A stretch of DNA of 64,000 nt from Octopus sinensis. Taxonomy: Eukaryota. The stretch spans positions 30,194,001-30,258,000 of the forward strand of contig NC_043010.1 of NCBI RefSeq assembly GCF_006345805.1. The letters run 5' to 3'. A program made the position numbers and the translations under genes. Below, in pieces: positions 4,910 to 50,390 of the stretch. The notes beneath the pieces are model-generated. The model was not told the origin of the DNA. It did no database searches and was given only the letters and a program-made list of their open reading frames with translations. Each line of letters starts with the position of its first letter. Positions within the stretch are counted from its first letter, which is position 1.

Positions 4910-5049
4910 CGGAATCCTATTTGTTACAAGTAATCAGAAGTATCTGGCGTGAAGATGACTCTATATCGTTATGCACTGCTTTCTACAGCGGAGAATATTC
5001 TCGCTATTTTGCCAACAGTTACAGAAATCTTAAGAATATAACTATTATG
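4910..5049 (+). CDS. Exon (phase 1-0) of multi-PLAT-like gene: ESYLLQVIRSIW...RNLKNITIM
   Basis: ccttaag|cg acceptor, open frame, atg|gtacgg donor; joins in frame to 5149. Confidence 0.45.
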
Positions 5050-5148
5050 GTACGGCTCTTCTACGCTTCTGACTAAGTTAAAAAATGAATAATAATATCG
5101 ATTTTACTGTTCTTTCAGTGTTATTCACTCGAAATTCTTCTTTTTCAG

Positions 5149-5224
5149 TTCGATATCAATGTCTACCAGAGATTCAACCAGTACTTGATCAATTATCGGC
5201 CCTCAAATTCCTGTGAGATTACTG
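5149..5224 (+). CDS. Exon (phase 0-1): FDINVYQRFNQYLINYRPSNSCEIT
   Basis: ttctttttcag| acceptor, actg|gtaata donor, 76 nt open, phase matches the 6509 exon. Confidence 0.6.
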
Positions 5225-6508
5225 GTAATAATAAAAAATTGTTTTTGATTTTTAATCTTTCAAATTATGGGAAAGCGATTGGTAACGTTAATGCTGGTGT
5301 TTTACTTTTGTTGGTAGTAATGCTGGTGTTAGTGTTGGTGCGTTGGACATCTGAAAATATTGCTCTTACATTTCCAGTTAATCTGAATCATTCAGAGTTA
5401 CTATCTTTTCCAGCAATACGTACTCTTGTCTCTTCAAAGAGTAATCACTAGGCAGAGATTCAGGTTCTGCTACCCATACCACCTCAATGCATACTTGCAC
5501 AGATCAACAGCTTATTAATTTGACTCCAGTACTTGACATGTACTTTTAGCGAACTCTAGTACTTTTGTTGACTCCTGTACTTGGCATGTACTATTTTATC
5601 AAGCTTTCATCAAAGAATGGAAAGTAAAGTTTCATTTAGAGAGATATGAAATCAGAAGACAACGAGACAGAAGAAACAGCGTGAGCTATTTCGCCCGACG
5701 CTTTAACAATTGTGTCATTCCACTTGCCGCATTCTCTGCTGACTAAGCTTTATTTTCAAAATATTAGTTATCTACCATGAGCTTACAGATTAATCCTCCA
5801 GAAAATAATAAACGATTTAAATCCATACTATCTATACAATGCTCCCGACACATCTCTAGAAATACAGTATTAAAATCTGCTCAGAAATAATTTGCCGAGT
5901 GTGAATAAAATCTCCACCTGGTTGTGGACGCTTCTATGAGATGAGTTTAATGTAATTTGGATTATTCCATATCAGACACCACACGTAGTCGATAGGCAGT
6001 AGGTATGGCTGCGTGATTAAGCTGTCTGCTTAACAACCACGTGGTTTTGAGTTAGATGCCACCATGCGGCTCTTAAGACAAGTGTCTATTTACCATAGCT
6101 TCAGGTGGAAATTGATAGACGGAAACTTCGGTGGAGTTTATGAGTGGAATTTGATAAATTGAATCTTTTTGAAAGCATGTAAGAAGGACCATGATTTATA
6201 CATATAAGATGTTGCTTAATTTAACAGCATCACTTCCTCTGGTGTATTTAACAGTTCCATTTTGTTGCTTGTATTTAGGCTCACTCTGAGAATAACTTAT
6301 CCCTTCTTTCGTCTGTCTTGAATGTCCTAAAGAAATTATAGACACTGCTTTTCGTTTTCTGACTGCACTGATAATGAAGATAACAGGTTCATTTCATTGT
6401 TGATTCTGATTTACATTTAACTCCAAACACTATACCTTAGGTTAAAATACACTGACAGATTTACTGATGAAGCAAAACTTATGCTATATTTTCCTCCACT
6501 TCTTACAG

Positions 6509-6729
6509 ATGCTGAGTTTAGACTGATGCTGGTAGTAATTAAAACAAATTTCAGCAAAGCAGATTATACAAGCAGCTGGTATTTTCGATTAAATGGCGAG
6601 CTTGAATTCAGTTTTCAAGGAATAACACCCGGTAGGACTCAAATATTCTTGGTCCCTAAAGTACAGTATCACAGTATAAGTTCACTGGAAGTCTCAGTAT
6701 CATGGCGGAGCAATTTCATTTTAAATGAG
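6509..6729 (+). CDS. Exon (phase 1-0), PLAT-like module: DAEFRLMLVVIK...SNFILNE
   Basis: cttcttacag| acceptor, gag|gtaagt donor, 221 nt open (within ORF 6481-6771). Confidence 0.75.
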
Positions 6730-8099
6730 GTAAGTATGTACAGCCAAAACTTGAAATGGTCAATTAGATAAGGCTTAAAGCCAAACTATTCATAGAACCA
6801 AACTACTCATAGAACCAAACTATATAGCATTATACAATTATAAATAACCACTTGAGCAAGAAAGATTCGTGAACTAATGCCGTTGCATTAAGCGTGTGGT
6901 GTATTCGTTACAGCTTCAAAGTAACAAAAGAAACTTTCTGTGCATGACTGTGATGCATCGTTCATTGTAGTTGGTTTCATTTACTGAGACTCTCAGAATT
7001 GTTTCTAACTATTAAATGTTTCTATGGGCTTGGTTCATATTCAGGAATATATATGCACATACATAAATATTTACATACATACATACATACATACATACAT
7101 ATATACATACATACATACTACATACATACATACATATAAATGTACGTACACTATGTATGTATGTATGTATATATGCATGTATGTATGGATGTATATATAT
7201 ATATATATATATATATATATATATATATGTGTGTGTGTATGTGTGTCTGTGTGTATACATTATCTATCTATCTATCTATCTATCTATCTATCTATCCATC
7301 TATCTTCATACATTGTATATACATACACCATATATATATATATATTATATATATATATATATATATACATATATATATATATATATATATAGTCATAAAT
7401 TGCACACACACATACACGCACATGCACACATACACACACACACACACGAATATGTATATATGGATAAATAGACAGATACAGATATATTGATATATGAGGT
7501 AAGTAATACGGGAGGCAATAGAAAAATGTGTATTATGTTTGGGTGTGAAATGCTATAATGTTGAAGAAAGTTATGAACAAGAGAAGGGAAAGAGGGCACA
7601 ACACAATGCTGGTGCAAGAACAAAACAAGAGTTTTAATTCTGTGAGTGAATAAAAATAGTAAGGTACGTAAAGGAGCAAGAGGAATGCGACAGAAGTGAA
7701 GTTAGAGTGAGATGGAAAATGAAAGGAGAGAAAAAAGAATAATTAGAGAAATGAACAAACTAGTTCATGAAGTGAAGAGAAAGTGGGAAAAAATTAAGAG
7801 AACTGAGTAAGAATTGGAGGGTAAATATTATACTAAAACTGACAAAAATATAACATACATAAATGAAATAAATAAATAAATGCTACGTTCGAATTTATAA
7901 TAAAGGGAGATGGGAATTTCACCCGAGTCTACGCTACAAAGTGGTACGAGAATTGGTTGAAATGTTAATAGACTGACTATGAAGGAGTCATGCTAGAGTC
8001 ATGCATTAGTTTCAACCAGCTTATTAATAACTGCATTGTTTCTTCCTATGTAAACTGACATATGACTATTCAAGAAAGACTTCAAATGTAGCTACGAGT

Positions 8100-8896
8100 G
8101 ATTTCCCTTGAAAATCGATAAAATTAGGCATCTTGGTGTTATCAAGTATCTGCGAAAAAAAGGACATTTACTCTGAAGGACATTCACGCTGACATGGTTG
8201 CTACATTAGGGGATGATGCCTCAGCTTTATCAACACTGCAAAAGTGGACAGCTGAATTTAAGAGGGGAAGGGAGAGTTTCGAAGATGATCCAAGGTTTGG
8301 ACGTCTTGCAACAACCATCATCGAGGACAACATTGATCGTGTTCACCACATACTGATGGATGACATTCGATTGATTATAAATCAAAGAGTCAGTGTTATT
8401 AGCATATCCCGTGAGAGGGTTGAGAATATTCTGCAATACGAACTTGGCACGACAAAGGTTTCTACTCGGTAGATGCCACCTCTTCTGACACCTGATCAGA
8501 AGTGCACCAGAGTGATCATGTGAGAAAATCTGACATTGTTTGAGGCAGAACTAGCTGGTTTCCTTGAAAGTTTCCTAAACCAGGATGAGTGCTGAGTTGA
8601 TGACTTTGGGTCAGAGACAAAGAGACAATCCAAGCAGTGGAAACACTCCGTCTCACCTGCTCCAAAGAAGGCCAAGGTTGTCTCATCTGCAGTGACGGTG
8701 ATGGTCACAGTTTTTTGGGACACAAAAGGCATTGTGCTTATTGACTATTTTCAAATTGGTCACACCATCAATGGAGAGTACTGTGCCAACTTGCCAGGGC
8801 AGTTAGAAAGGGCTATCAAGACCAGGAAAACTGACGAAAGTGGTCTTTTTTCATGAGGACAATGCTCCAGCATAAAAGTCTTTGGTTTCAATGGCT
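8100..8896 (+). mobile_element. Mariner transposase, N-terminal two-thirds, degenerate
   Basis: DMVATLGDDASALSTLQKWTAEFKRGRESFEDDPRFGR (HTH), QSKQWKH.....PKKAK, VMVTVFWDTKGIVLIDY, HEDNAPA; stops and frameshifts. Confidence 0.85.
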
Positions 8897-48734: not shown

Positions 48735-49158
48735 AGTAAGCACCGCTCTTCGTTGAGGGACTTCCTCTACCGGCTGGATATATATAGATTTTCACAGTAA
48801 CCACAGTCACTGGCGTAGAAAATATGCTCGAAAACAATAATAAATCTCTGGGCGAGATATAAACAGTAACTGCTCTATAACATAAAAGGGATCAGCCATC
48901 TGAATGTGGCTAGGGTCAGGGACGTCGATGTTCGCCTGGGGCTAAATGCATCAGTAACACCCCACCACCCCGCCCTGACCCTAGCCACATTCAGATGGCT
49001 GATCCCTCTTATGTTATAGAGCAGTTACTGTTTATATCTCGCCCAGAGATTTATTATTGTTTTCGAACAGATTTTCTACGCAGTGACTGTGGTTACTGTG
49101 AAAATCTATATATATCCAGCCGGTAGAGGAAGTCCCTTAACGAAGAGCGGTGCTTACC

Positions 49159-49198
49159 ATACGTTGACAAGAGGCAATAACCTCGAAACGGTCCGTGT
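49159..49198 (+). ncRNA. Type I hammerhead, U3:A8 core variant (1 nt missing in helix III)
   Basis: atacg ttgacaa gagg caataa cctc gaaac g gtc cgtgt. Confidence 0.65.
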
Positions 49199-49453
49199 GT
49201 AGTATCCGTATCTTCGGGGAGGCTGATCTCCCTTTGCTGGCTGGCAAGGACACCGAGATGGTGTCAGCTCTTCTGGTGACGTCGATGTTCGCCTGGGGCT
49301 AAATGCATCAGTAACAACCCCACCACCCCGCCCTGACCCTAGCCACATTCAGATGGCTGATCCCTCTTATGTTATAGAGCAGTTACTGTTTATATCTCGC
49401 CCAGAGATTTATTATTGTTGTATATATATATATATATATATATATATACATAT

Positions 49454-49852
49454 ACTAGCAGTATTGCCCGGCGTTGCTCGGGTTTGTAAGGGAAATAACT
49501 ATATAAGCATTTTTAGAGATGTAAAGTATAATAGCCATCTCAATATGGCTAACCGCAAAGGGGAGGGGTGTTACTGTAGCTTTTTACGTTCTGAGATTTA
49601 ATAATACATTTTTAGAGAGTTACTTCCCTTATATATGCCAAAAATGCATTAAAAATGGGAAAAATTTATGGTAATTTTTTTTTTAAATCGTAGACTCATC
49701 GTAGACGCGCGCTAATACCCAGAAGGGCTCGATATGAATCACGACTATAAGATACCCGGTTTTGGTTCAACTGCATCGCAAAATGTGGGAGTAGTTAGGA
49801 ATCTAAATCGTAGGAGACAGACAGCACACAACCTCTCTTTTATATATAAAGA
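49454..49852 (-). mobile_element. Non-autonomous Helitron-like element
   Basis: 5' TC start at 49852, subterminal hairpin cccg..cggg and CTAGT 3' end, inserted in (TA)n; same 3' end at 63928. Confidence 0.7.
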
Positions 49853-49994
49853 TATATATATATATATATAATGAAATTGTTAAATCTTCCAACTTATAAA
49901 CTTGTGACTCTAAAACGAGTAAACTTGTGATTCCAAAAGAAAGACTATGACAATAGTTATGAAAAGATTCGTTCTGTTCTTTTTTTTCTTTCAG

Positions 49995-50390
49995 AAAACC
50001 TAATTACAACATCTGTAACAACAACAAGCGAAATAACAACAGAAGAAGATACACAACCGGAAACAACTTCTATCACAGCGAAAACAGAATATACTCAAAA
50101 CGCGGGGATAACTAGTAACATTGAAAGAGAAACAACTGACGCAGTGAAAGTCACCAAGCCAGATTTCCATATAAAAACAGATGCCTCCCATGGAACAGAT
50201 GACCAAAATAACAGACAAGACAGCACTAACCCAGTAGTTACGGGGCCTTGGATTGTTTTCACTAATGACAGTGTTAAGTACACCAGTACTCAGAAAACTA
50301 CTCAGAAAATTACTCGGAAAGGAATAACTCCTGAGTATAACAGTACTAGATACAACAGAAGTAGGGTCGATAATACTGTGGCCATTGGAA
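49995..50390 (+). CDS. Exon (phase 1-1), Thr/Ser-rich mucin-like stalk
   Basis: tttctttcag| and ggaa|gtaagt; 396 nt open: NLITTSVTTTSEITTEEDTQPETTS...NTVAIG. Confidence 0.8.

Follow-up and report, generated by a model that had tools for sequence, protein, structure and literature searches.

A rapidly evolving octopod gene encoding PLAT-type modules on a Thr-rich stalk, probably a surface receptor

Gene structure and orthology

The window, a 64,000-nt stretch of Octopus sinensis contig NC_043010.1, contains ten plus-strand exons between 6509 and 50390 that splice into a single open frame of 1761 nt (586 codons). All ten exons have pyrimidine-rich AG acceptors, and the donors are of the GTRAGT type at nine of them and GCAAGT (after 20046) at the other, as expected from the original prediction of GT(GC)-AG borders joined in one frame. 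These exons, two putative upstream exons and an alternative terminal piece are listed below.

4910-5049, + strand: putative upstream exon, first part of module M0; AG acceptor with a weak pyrimidine tract, GTACGG donor; in no gene model
5149-5224, + strand: putative upstream exon, second part of M0; acceptor and GTAATA donor kept in O. bimaculoides; restores phase into 6509
6509-6729, + strand, 221 nt: module 1 (M1) exon A; canonical junctions; matches P0001 residues 1-69; acceptor identical in O. bimaculoides
11108-11192, + strand, 85 nt: M1 exon B; canonical junctions, matched in O. bimaculoides; motif FVHxExLTxQ kept in paralogues
18032-18264, + strand, 233 nt: module 2 (M2) exon A; N-terminal two thirds of a PLAT/LH2 domain by Pfam PLAT and hhalign
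19950-20046, + strand, 97 nt: M2 exon B; C-terminal third of PLAT; GC donor, its GCAAGT kept in O. bimaculoides
27271-27488, + strand, 218 nt: module 3 (M3) exon A; probable degenerate PLAT by hhalign; junctions matched in O. bimaculoides
29581-29683, + strand, 103 nt: M3 exon B; canonical junctions, matched in O. bimaculoides
35811-35906, + strand, 96 nt: Cys linker exon, CxxxxxC; both Cys invariant across all paralogues
37121-37341, + strand, 221 nt: module 4 (M4) exon A; beta module, Cys conserved, PLAT not demonstrable; O. vulgaris model P0002 starts here
42650-42740, + strand, 91 nt: M4 exon B; ends in an invariant C-E/Q-W motif; junctions used by O. vulgaris CAI9732766.1
49995-50390, + strand, 396 nt: Thr-rich stalk exon of 132 codons, assigned by composition; included in P0002
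51897-51901, + strand: alternative terminal coding piece TT TGA, from the O. vulgaris gene model; anchorless product ending ...AIGI*

The gene matches Octopus bimaculoides LOC106884345 exon for exon and at every junction, including the GC donor, and all differences in exon length are multiples of 3. The locus is colinear between the two species, and outside the exons the DNA is ~92% identical where it aligns, or 84-92% by block with gaps included. These correspondences identify the window gene as the O. vulgaris/sinensis orthologue of LOC106884345. Annotation in the O. vulgaris/sinensis complex covers the last three exons only, as the partial 178-residue O. vulgaris model P0002 (CAI9732766.1), which independently uses the last two junctions. 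The earlier description of the gene as unrecognised must be softened, given this partial model and a RefSeq model in O. bimaculoides, though the latter is named just 'uncharacterized'. Judged by its junctions, open frame, orthologous exon structure and the junctions of the O. vulgaris model, this is a real multi-exon gene as first proposed, and the exons between 6509 (or perhaps 4910) and 50390 code for the central portion of a genuine protein.

Twelve to thirteen chained exons had been predicted, and ten of these are backed by junctions, frame and orthologue. The two exons further upstream, 4910-5049 and 5149-5224, would bring the total to twelve; they are open in both the window and O. bimaculoides and chain in phase into 6509, and the first differs between the species by one in-frame 3-nt indel. 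Spliced straight onto 6509, exon 4910-5049 runs at once into a stop, and it requires 1 base from some unseen exon further upstream. The M0 sequence aligns where expected, ahead of M1 in the paralogues, without reaching significance (P=0.03-0.7), and that both exons belong to the gene is unproven.

Fold assignment of the modules

The encoded part consists of four all-beta modules of ~100 residues, each encoded by an A/B exon pair of identical phases, in the order M1-M2-M3, short Cys linker, M4 and Thr-rich stalk, with ten conserved cysteines. The Pfam PLAT/LH2 (PF01477) score of M2 is 16.6 bits for the 18032 exon alone, 18.9 bits when spliced with 19950 and 22.6 bits in O. bimaculoides, against a cutoff of 23. 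Although these scores fall below the cutoff, profile-profile comparison with true PLAT repeats (hhalign) gives 97.2% (P=3.6e-11), and the multi-PLAT protein P0087 matches M2 at E=1e-5 library-wide. On these profile matches M2 is a PLAT/LH2 sandwich, and the PLAT consensus originally read in the 18032 and 19950 exons is upheld. M3 is probably a degenerate PLAT (hhalign 94.9%, P=4.6e-8); the PDB profile matches of both M2 and M3 are PLAT regions, with that of pancreatic lipase found for M3 at E=0.1-0.4. M1 is possibly PLAT-derived, with a score of 4.2% (P=0.0098) against PLAT and P=0.002 against M2. M4 scores 0.2% against PLAT and matches no other module, and with no PLAT signal in these comparisons its fold is not assignable to PLAT.

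A shallow AF2 model (15 rows, mean pLDDT 56; below 50 in M3 and 57-83 in M4) predicts 8 beta strands in each of M1-M4. Foldseek matches this model to the PLAT domains of lipoxygenases, lipase and alpha-toxin at probability 1.00, without specifying the matching module, and the correspondence with the PLAT domains of 5-LOX, 8R-LOX, 15-LOX and pancreatic lipase covers ~110 columns at an rmsd of ~3 Å. The term 'tandem PLAT' fits M2 and probably M3, weakly M1 (P about 0.002-0.01), and does not extend to M4, which shows no relation in these comparisons.

A stricter reading would make that term a misnomer, the protein being a mosaic of unrelated beta-sandwich folds in which PLAT is confined to M2 (and M3), while M1, M4 and the upstream modules are of other origin. 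This would account for the M4 result, for the low score of M1 and for the lack of detectable pairwise similarity among the modules, which extends to a non-significant direct comparison of M2 with M3. We regard a mosaic as possible but somewhat unlikely, as all four modules have one and the same A/B exon layout with identical phases and A exons of nearly equal length (221, 233, 218 and 221 nt), 8 strands are predicted in each, and M1 aligns to M2 and PLAT in one register, with the exon junction at the equivalent aligned position in M1 and M2.

Stalk, membrane anchor and topology

The predicted 132-codon Thr-rich exon is present (Thr 23%, Ser+Thr 30.5%). Proline makes up 3.8%, the exon has no real tandem repeats (a 12-nt x 2.8 repeat only), and the window gene contains neither a SEA domain nor PTS tandem repeats. 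By these features the stalk is not a classical mucin, and what stands of the proposed 'mucin stalk' is its threonine content. The N-X-S/T sequons, originally put at more than a dozen, number 12 in the 586-codon frame and one more in the putative upstream exon, but the count carries no weight, being within the expectation from composition (shuffles 9.3 +/- 2.7, P=0.21).

The O. bimaculoides orthologue ends in the stalk and a transmembrane (TM) cassette. The matching anchor exon of the window gene would lie beyond the window end; as the locus is colinear up to that end, the exon is expected ~5-6 kb further on. Found mollusc-wide, the cassette comprises CxCxC and a helix, followed by a basic stretch (K.TSKY.RSK.S..D.R.SS), an Asp-containing TM helix and ~8 tail residues. 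In 143 relatives it follows only extracellular domains (C-type lectin, WSC, discoidin, TSP1, Ig, Sushi, MAM and PLAT by Pfam). The single-PLAT relative P0025 combines a signal peptide, PLAT (54.8 bits), stalk and cassette, and the full-length paralogues P0151, P0153 and P0168 start with signal peptides. The context of the cassette and the signal peptides of the paralogues support an outward-facing protein, very probably at the cell surface with its modules extracellular, in agreement with the secreted or cell-surface location first proposed.

The opposite topology is very unlikely: a tail-anchored protein lacking a signal peptide, with the C-terminal TM helix inserted post-translationally and the PLAT modules cytosolic, the arrangement known from LOXHD1, lipoxygenases and polycystin-1. 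In its favour, the majority of characterised PLAT domains lie inside the cell. In addition, the RefSeq model P0001 starts from an internal ATG and lacks a signal peptide, the TM helix ends ~8 residues before the C terminus, and the upstream signal-peptide exon that had been suggested was not found in the window, nor within 10 kb upstream in O. bimaculoides. However, since the 6509 acceptor is conserved and the frame continues open upstream of the ATG, P0001 is probably 5'-truncated. Moreover, the relatives carry the cassette C-terminal to lectin, WSC and similar domains, signal peptides are present on the full-length paralogues and P0025, and the cysteines (10/10 conserved between the window gene and its O. 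bimaculoides orthologue) and Thr-rich stalk suit an extracellular location.

A mainly secreted, anchorless protein, with modules and stalk released, is improbable. The sole sister-species model does end in ...AIGI*: the end of the P0002 gene in L002 maps to window position 51901, after an acceptor ...cacctttag. The O. vulgaris annotation drew on Iso-Seq and RNA-seq, among other evidence (PMC10700109). Yet CAI9732766.1 is badly truncated at its 5' end and so of low quality, the anchor exon is spliced in by O. bimaculoides and by every paralogue, colinearity to the window end leads to the same expectation here, and anchored and anchorless isoforms could coexist. The end at 51897-51901 marks a genuine soluble isoform, or else it is an artefact of the annotation.

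Paralogue cluster and evolutionary rate

Relatives with several modules turned up in Octopus and Argonauta only, consistent with the lineage specificity originally suggested: O. sinensis LOC118766054, LOC118765933 and LOC118766049, O. bimaculoides LOC106876258 and an Argonauta hians protein, all 'uncharacterized'. LOC118766054 starts ~19 kb downstream on the same strand, directly in tandem, and gene order places the window gene in a small head-to-tail cluster of octopod-specific paralogues. The octopod paralogues lie on the same chromosome and share the arrangement M1-M2-M3, Cys linker, M4, stalk and cassette, but are only 20-32% identical to the window gene. The LOC106876258/LOC118766049 pair differs further in having almost no stalk and in being 86% identical across the species split, where the window gene is 68% identical.

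The gene is under strong positive selection, which is its most notable property and is new in this analysis. Relative to O. bimaculoides, the Nei-Gojobori dN/dS is 1.66, and it reaches 2.23 when the observed ts/tv is used (P=3e-6). With the neutral rate at 0.081 (over 27.7 kb), a dN of 0.19-0.20 is ~2.4x the intron rate. Third codon positions change least (102/99/69 changes by position), and loops of the predicted structure diverge more than strands (41.6% vs 22.2%, P=5e-4). Of the 10 exon differences that separate the window from the O. vulgaris assembly, every one is nonsynonymous.

A dN/dS that is not below 1, in a gene missing or partial in the vulgaris/sinensis annotations, could also describe a decaying or neutrally drifting copy that has lost constraint and kept its frame by luck. 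This is hardly credible, as only 1/20,000 neutral simulations left the frame open (mean 10.8 stops), indels relative to O. bimaculoides are in frame in 6/6 coding cases compared to 8/25 in an intron, and all splice sites are kept. In addition, Cys residues and strands are preferentially conserved, and dN stands at 2.4 times the neutral rate, not level with it.

Discussion

Our analysis of the locus points to a surface receptor for recognition or adhesion, diversifying rapidly and with PLAT-type modules on a Thr-rich stalk, as the probable product of this octopod tandem gene cluster. Amino-acid change faster than neutral is typical of recognition or immune receptors, and change at ~2.4x the neutral rate is the signature of an arms race with a ligand. 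Going by the orthologue and relatives, the last exon just beyond the window would add the anchor cassette, while a signal peptide and additional modules would come from exons further upstream. This would make the product a type I surface glycoprotein, its chain of beta-sandwiches held off the membrane by a probably O-glycosylated stalk. The variable sandwich loops would form a putative binding surface for a co-evolving ligand, for which the surface of a microbe or parasite, a lipid or membrane, and a gamete or self-recognition partner are candidates. The protein would have hardly any cytoplasmic tail, so that signalling, if there is any, would need a partner, which the TM Asp may recruit; alternatively, the protein may be purely an adhesion or decoy molecule.

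By profile-profile comparison M2, and probably M3, are homologous to the PLAT beta-sandwiches of lipoxygenases and pancreatic lipase, and lipase PLAT domains work outside the cell too. Unlike those enzymes, the window gene has no attached catalytic domain and several modules in a row, its Pfam score lies below the cutoff, and its loops evolve very fast. Consecutive PLAT-type modules are also found in the cytosolic LOXHD1 and in protist multi-PLAT proteins (P0087, 7 repeats), but those arrays are long, with canonical and mutually similar repeats and no signal peptide, stalk or TM helix. By contrast, the window gene has two demonstrable PLAT modules, no detectable similarity between modules, and a product predicted to face outward and be membrane-anchored. 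A PLAT/LH2 domain in a multidomain protein that acts outside the cell, presumably in binding, has a precedent in Plasmodium CCp3/PSLAP of the LCCL/LAP family, an adhesive protein with a signal peptide (PMC2211786). It differs in having a single LH2 among LCCL, SR and pentraxin-like domains and no stalk or TM helix, and it comes from an unrelated lineage with no detectable orthology.

A binding ectodomain, Ser/Thr-rich stalk, single TM helix and very short tail are also the layout of yeast Wsc1/Mid2-type sensors and MUC1-type mucins, an architectural resemblance to the window protein rather than homology. Unlike those proteins, it has no SEA domain or PTS repeats and is low in proline. Some relatives that carry the cassette are named 'cell wall integrity and stress response component 1-like' by NCBI.

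Exon structure and conservation

The AT-rich, repeat-laden eukaryotic DNA of the window carries a conserved, spliced and positively selected gene, which encodes PLAT-type and other beta modules followed by a Thr-rich stalk. A splice-aware scan of the plus strand recovered a small set of open exons whose acceptors are strong, whose donors are of the GTRAGT type and whose phases alternate regularly. Ten of these join in a single uninterrupted frame of 1761 nt (586 codons), with nine GT donors and one GCAAGT donor after position 20046. Each of four modules (M1-M4) is encoded by an A exon and a B exon. 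In the A exons (221, 233, 218 and 221 nt) the first two bases belong to a split codon and the end is in phase 0; the B exons (85-103 nt) start in phase 0 and end with one extra base.

Exons of the ten-exon chain, by position in the window
6509-6729, plus strand: M1 A exon, 221 nt
11108-11192, plus strand: M1 B exon, 85 nt in the window and 91 nt in Octopus bimaculoides
18032-18264, plus strand: M2 A exon, 233 nt
19950-20046, plus strand: M2 B exon, GCAAGT donor
27271-27488, plus strand: M3 A exon, 218 nt
29581-29683, plus strand: M3 B exon, joins the M3 A exon in frame
35811-35906, plus strand: linker exon with two Cys, 96 nt, between M3 and M4
37121-37341, plus strand: M4 A exon, 221 nt
42650-42740, plus strand: M4 B exon, joins the M4 A exon in frame
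49995-50390, plus strand: Thr-rich stalk exon, 396 nt, after M4

A protein search with the concatenated exons returned one match, the 'uncharacterized protein LOC106884345' of O. bimaculoides (P0001, 707 aa), which aligns colinearly to the ten exons with 55-80% identity. Colinearity of its genomic locus (L001) extends over the entire window, including introns and flanks. All junctions of the exons rebuilt there are identically placed, the GC donor among them, and every difference in exon length is a multiple of three (85/91, 96/102 and 396/399 nt, window first). LOC106884345 is thus assigned as the orthologue within the octopod cluster: its locus is colinear, its exons and introns are organised identically and its modules follow one another in the same sequence. 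A deeper search added an O. vulgaris 'hypothetical predicted protein' (P0002, CAI9732766.1, 178 aa), which by eye corresponds to the translated window exons 42650 and 49995 and a portion of exon 37121; identity between the O. vulgaris assembly and the window is ~98%. The divergence of O. vulgaris from O. sinensis dates to ~2.5 Mya, and that of both from O. bimaculoides to ~34 Mya (PMC10700109). The window is accordingly placed in the O. vulgaris/sinensis complex. The word-indexed protein search missed P0002 despite this partial match to the query, as well as P0003 and the full-length octopod paralogue P0153, both rows of the query alignment, and its negatives are weak evidence.

The original prediction called the gene unrecognised, which is half true. 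It is mostly unannotated in the vulgaris/sinensis lineage, where it is missing or truncated and leaves an annotation gap, but a fuller, probably 5'-truncated model exists in O. bimaculoides. Within the searchable literature library, searches on the locus, on octopus PLAT proteins, on 'extracellular PLAT domain' and on such a family found nothing relevant.

At the 5' end, a direct splice from 4910-5049 to 6509 was rejected as out of frame with an immediate stop; 4910-5049 reaches 6509 in phase via a small exon at 5149-5224. Adding these two putative exons to the chain gives the twelve originally proposed. Both occupy the correct alignment position before M1 of the paralogues, at a level short of significance. 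No convincing signal-peptide exon emerged when the window, and the 10 kb upstream in O. bimaculoides, were scanned for an ATG, hydrophobic stretch and donor. The sole conserved candidate, 3998-4051, was discarded, being out of phase and not signal-peptide-like. Nor did tblastn of the paralogue N-terminal regions against L001 and the window add any upstream exon. The LOC106884345 model itself appears to lack its true 5' exons, which agrees with the conserved acceptor at 6509 and the open frame upstream of its ATG.

Selection on the coding sequence

Of 1746 aligned coding sites, 270 (15.5%) differ between the window and O. bimaculoides, a rate twice that of non-exon sequence, which differs from L001 at 7.7% of aligned positions over 27.7 kb. 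Even so, the coding sequence contains no stop codon and all six of its indels are in frame, whereas in neutral simulations using the intron substitution spectrum the frame stayed open in 1 of 20,000 cases (mean 10.8 stops), and a neighbouring intron has only 8 indels out of 25 with a length divisible by three. These comparisons indicate that the reading frame is under selection.

By the Nei-Gojobori method, dS is 0.115, dN is 0.19 and omega is 1.66; at the observed ts/tv (about 1.5), omega is 2.23 (binomial P=3e-6). Relative to a neutral divergence of 0.081 (JC, 27.7 kb non-exon), dS lies near the neutral rate and dN at ~2.4 times that rate. The differences are fewest at third codon positions (102, 99 and 69 at positions 1, 2 and 3). 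Divergence reaches 41.6% in predicted loops versus 22.2% in strands (Fisher P=5e-4), and all ten cysteines are conserved. Across the same species split, a paralogue pair is 86% identical, compared with 68% for the gene studied. Between the window exons and the O. vulgaris assembly, all 10 differences (27277-37130) are nonsynonymous. Such a substitution pattern is typical of adaptive diversification upon a conserved scaffold and not of decay.

Fold of the modules

The architecture consists of four modules of ~100 residues each. Pfam searches of the raw exon ORFs and the spliced protein gave a single, sub-threshold PLAT match, to M2 (18032+19950), which scores 18.9 bits on PF01477 in the window and 22.6 bits in O. 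bimaculoides against a gathering score of 23 bits; M1, M3 and M4 had no match to PF01477. Two relatives exceed the cutoff, P0018 (23.3 bits) and the single-PLAT O. sinensis protein P0025 (54.8 bits). In hhalign comparisons with nine bona fide PLAT repeats, M2 matched at 97.2% (P=3.6e-11) and M3 (27271+29581) at 94.9% (P=4.6e-8). In addition, a seven-repeat PLAT protein matches M2 at E=1e-5 library-wide, lipoxygenase PLAT domains hold the top three ranks for the M2 family profile against the PDB, and the PLAT region of pancreatic lipase is among the PDB matches of the M3 profile. Searches of PDB sequences by phmmer with P0001 and with a two-sequence M2 profile returned nothing useful. We conclude that M2 is a PLAT domain and that M3 is probably one.

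For M1 (6509+11108) the assignment is doubtful. Its hhalign match to PLAT is weak (4.2%, P=0.0098); it matches M2 at P=0.002 in the same register, and its A/B intron lies at the same aligned residue as that of M2. M4 (37121+42650) reaches 0.2% against PLAT and matches nothing in the profile comparisons, and module-versus-module blastp gave no significant similarity. The shared exon pair makes a PLAT origin of all four modules plausible, M4 itself carrying no PLAT signal. By hhalign, the tandem PLAT arrangement of the original prediction therefore holds for M2 and M3, with M1 and M4 falling short.

When run on P0001 without an alignment, AlphaFold gave an unusable model (pLDDT 37.5). With a 15-row alignment of the orthologue, paralogues and exact translations of the window exons, the module region was modelled as all-beta with eight strands per module, at moderate confidence for M1, M2 and M4 and low confidence for M3. 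Foldseek matches to this model at probability 1.00 include the PLAT domains of pancreatic lipase and of 5-, 8R- and 15-lipoxygenase, over ~110 columns, and the PLAT-like domain of a clostridial alpha-toxin. The output carries no module assignment, and the match applies to at least one of the modules, presumably M2. By fold, the lipoxygenase and lipase PLAT domains are the nearest relatives.

A different precedent for several PLAT modules in one protein is the LOXHD1 type, in which canonical PLAT repeats that resemble one another form a long array; such a protein is soluble and cytosolic, with neither signal peptide nor transmembrane (TM) helix. We rejected a LOXHD1-like array because the modules here have no pairwise similarity, only two are demonstrably PLAT, and the orthologue ends in a TM cassette of surface type.

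Stalk, membrane anchor and topology

The stalk exon encodes 23% Thr, 30.5% Ser+Thr and 3.8% Pro, and its only repeat is a 12-nt unit in 2.8 copies. No SEA or other Pfam domain was found in the stalk or spliced protein. A classical membrane-tethered mucin was rejected given the low proline, the lack of real tandem repeats and the missing SEA domain. The proposed mucin stalk keeps its Thr-rich character, but is mucin-like at most. The sequons, which had also been put forward as evidence, have to be set aside: the 12 present, seven of them common to the orthologue, match expectation for an Asn/Ser/Thr-rich composition and show no enrichment over it (P=0.21).

P0001 residues 589-707, from the last exon of the orthologue, comprise CSCPC, a helix, the basic stretch TSKYKRSKISAPDERESS and an Asp-containing TM helix, with eight residues after it. 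In L001 this anchor exon lies 16 kb past the stalk exon, the cassette (P0001 ~615-707) occupying 71031-71392. From the colinearity of L001 and the window, the anchor exon is expected ~5-6 kb past the window end (position 64000), a stretch that lies outside loci L002 (O. vulgaris), L003 and L004; sensitive tblastn found none within the window. The O. vulgaris model CAI9732766.1 ends with a five-base coding piece (TT TGA) at window 51897-51901, behind an acceptor at 51896, and its product has no membrane anchor. Such an end points to a soluble isoform or else to an artefact of annotation.

The cassette, seen in P0001 and all paralogues, has the layout CxCxC, T.EEL helix, K.TSKY.RSK.S..D.R.SS, TM helix with a conserved Asp, and short tail. 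In the deep search it was the most widespread part of P0001, with at least 224 clusters at E<=1e-3, mostly matching residues 590-705 only, from octopuses, Argonauta, cuttlefish, mussels and a scallop. Asp667 and Arg669 are invariant, and Cys622, Cys624 and the TM Asp694 nearly so. In 143 members, every Pfam domain preceding the cassette is of a classical extracellular type: C-type lectin, WSC, discoidin, IgGFc-binding, TSP1, Ig, PAN, Kringle, Sushi, MAM, SUEL lectin and PLAT. P0025 runs from a signal peptide through PLAT and a Ser/Thr stalk to the cassette, and the full-length octopod paralogues P0151, P0153 and P0168 start with a hydrophobic signal sequence ~250-300 residues ahead of their M1 equivalent. 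From these partner domains and signal peptides we infer that the cassette anchors type I surface proteins and that the modules of the gene studied would face outward. Its own signal peptide, membrane anchor and outward orientation are predicted from the orthologue and family. The cassette looks like an undescribed mollusc-wide domain with no Pfam model, and marks a gap in domain coverage.

Possible function

PLAT domains are mostly known as intracellular membrane-docking modules, or as one appendage on a secreted lipase. If several PLAT-derived modules are indeed carried by a stalked surface protein that is restricted to octopods, encoded in a tandem cluster and changing more than twice as fast as neutral sequence, the PLAT fold would be put to a new use. 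Plasmodium CCp3 offers a precedent as an extracellular PLAT-bearing multidomain protein, and in layout the protein is similar to mucins and stalked surface sensors. Interest centres on how strong the selection signal is and on the apparently undescribed anchor cassette.

The pattern of change suggests that a co-evolving ligand may be tracked by a binding surface made up of the loops of a disulfide-stabilised beta-sandwich chain. With hardly any tail and a conserved TM Asp, the protein may signal through a partner, or serve solely as an adhesion molecule or decoy. It is tempting, if rather unlikely, to speculate that the octopod cluster, with the gene studied as its fastest member, is an unrecognised class of diversifying recognition receptor. 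PLAT-derived sandwiches would then fill the role of Ig, LRR or fibrinogen domains, stalked hypervariable loops would track pathogens or gamete/self markers, and signalling would pass through a partner recruited by the TM Asp of a cassette that is itself an undescribed domain. To our knowledge, very few receptors are known in cephalopod innate immunity and recognition, for which this gene is a concrete candidate.

Genomic context and intron contents

Each genome has only a few multi-module relatives, and these share a chromosome. A segment of L001 (80521-81178), ~9 kb past the O. bimaculoides stop, is orthologous to positions 1-667 of the O. sinensis LOC118766054 locus, the start of its 10-kb upstream flank. 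This orthology places LOC118766054 head-to-tail ~19 kb downstream of the orthologue and indicates that the family forms a tandem cluster.

The introns carry transposon remnants and simple repeats, outside the gene proper. A Mos1/mariner-type transposase remnant at 45102-46212 (plus strand; HTH_48 77 bits, Transposase_1 86 bits) lies in the intron between exons 42650 and 49995, and an ORF at 8128-8853 resembles such a remnant, with no Pfam match. Intronic LINE-type reverse-transcriptase fragments occur on the minus strand at 34138-34536 (RVT_1) and 11597-11947, and both strands carry related ORFs in the vicinity (9.0-12.6 kb and 33.0-35.1 kb). A ~1.26 kb tandem duplication (39700-41600) lies in the intron that follows exon 37121; in it, 39700-39999 and 40964-41263 are 98% identical, and 40046-40345 and 41300-41599 are 95% identical. 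The intron after the GC-donor exon holds a 4.5-kb AT-rich block (20100-24600; GC ~24%) with strong negative GC skew, TA-rich simple repeats and long spurious 'YIYIYI' ORFs on both strands. Finally, a short interspersed repeat of ~150-250 bp, with the translation '...NSAEVDFAFHPFRVDK...', is probably a SINE and has many copies in the window and L001, including those in the following window intervals.

Short interspersed repeat copies
30400-31420
42130-42310
56190-57080
61050-61290
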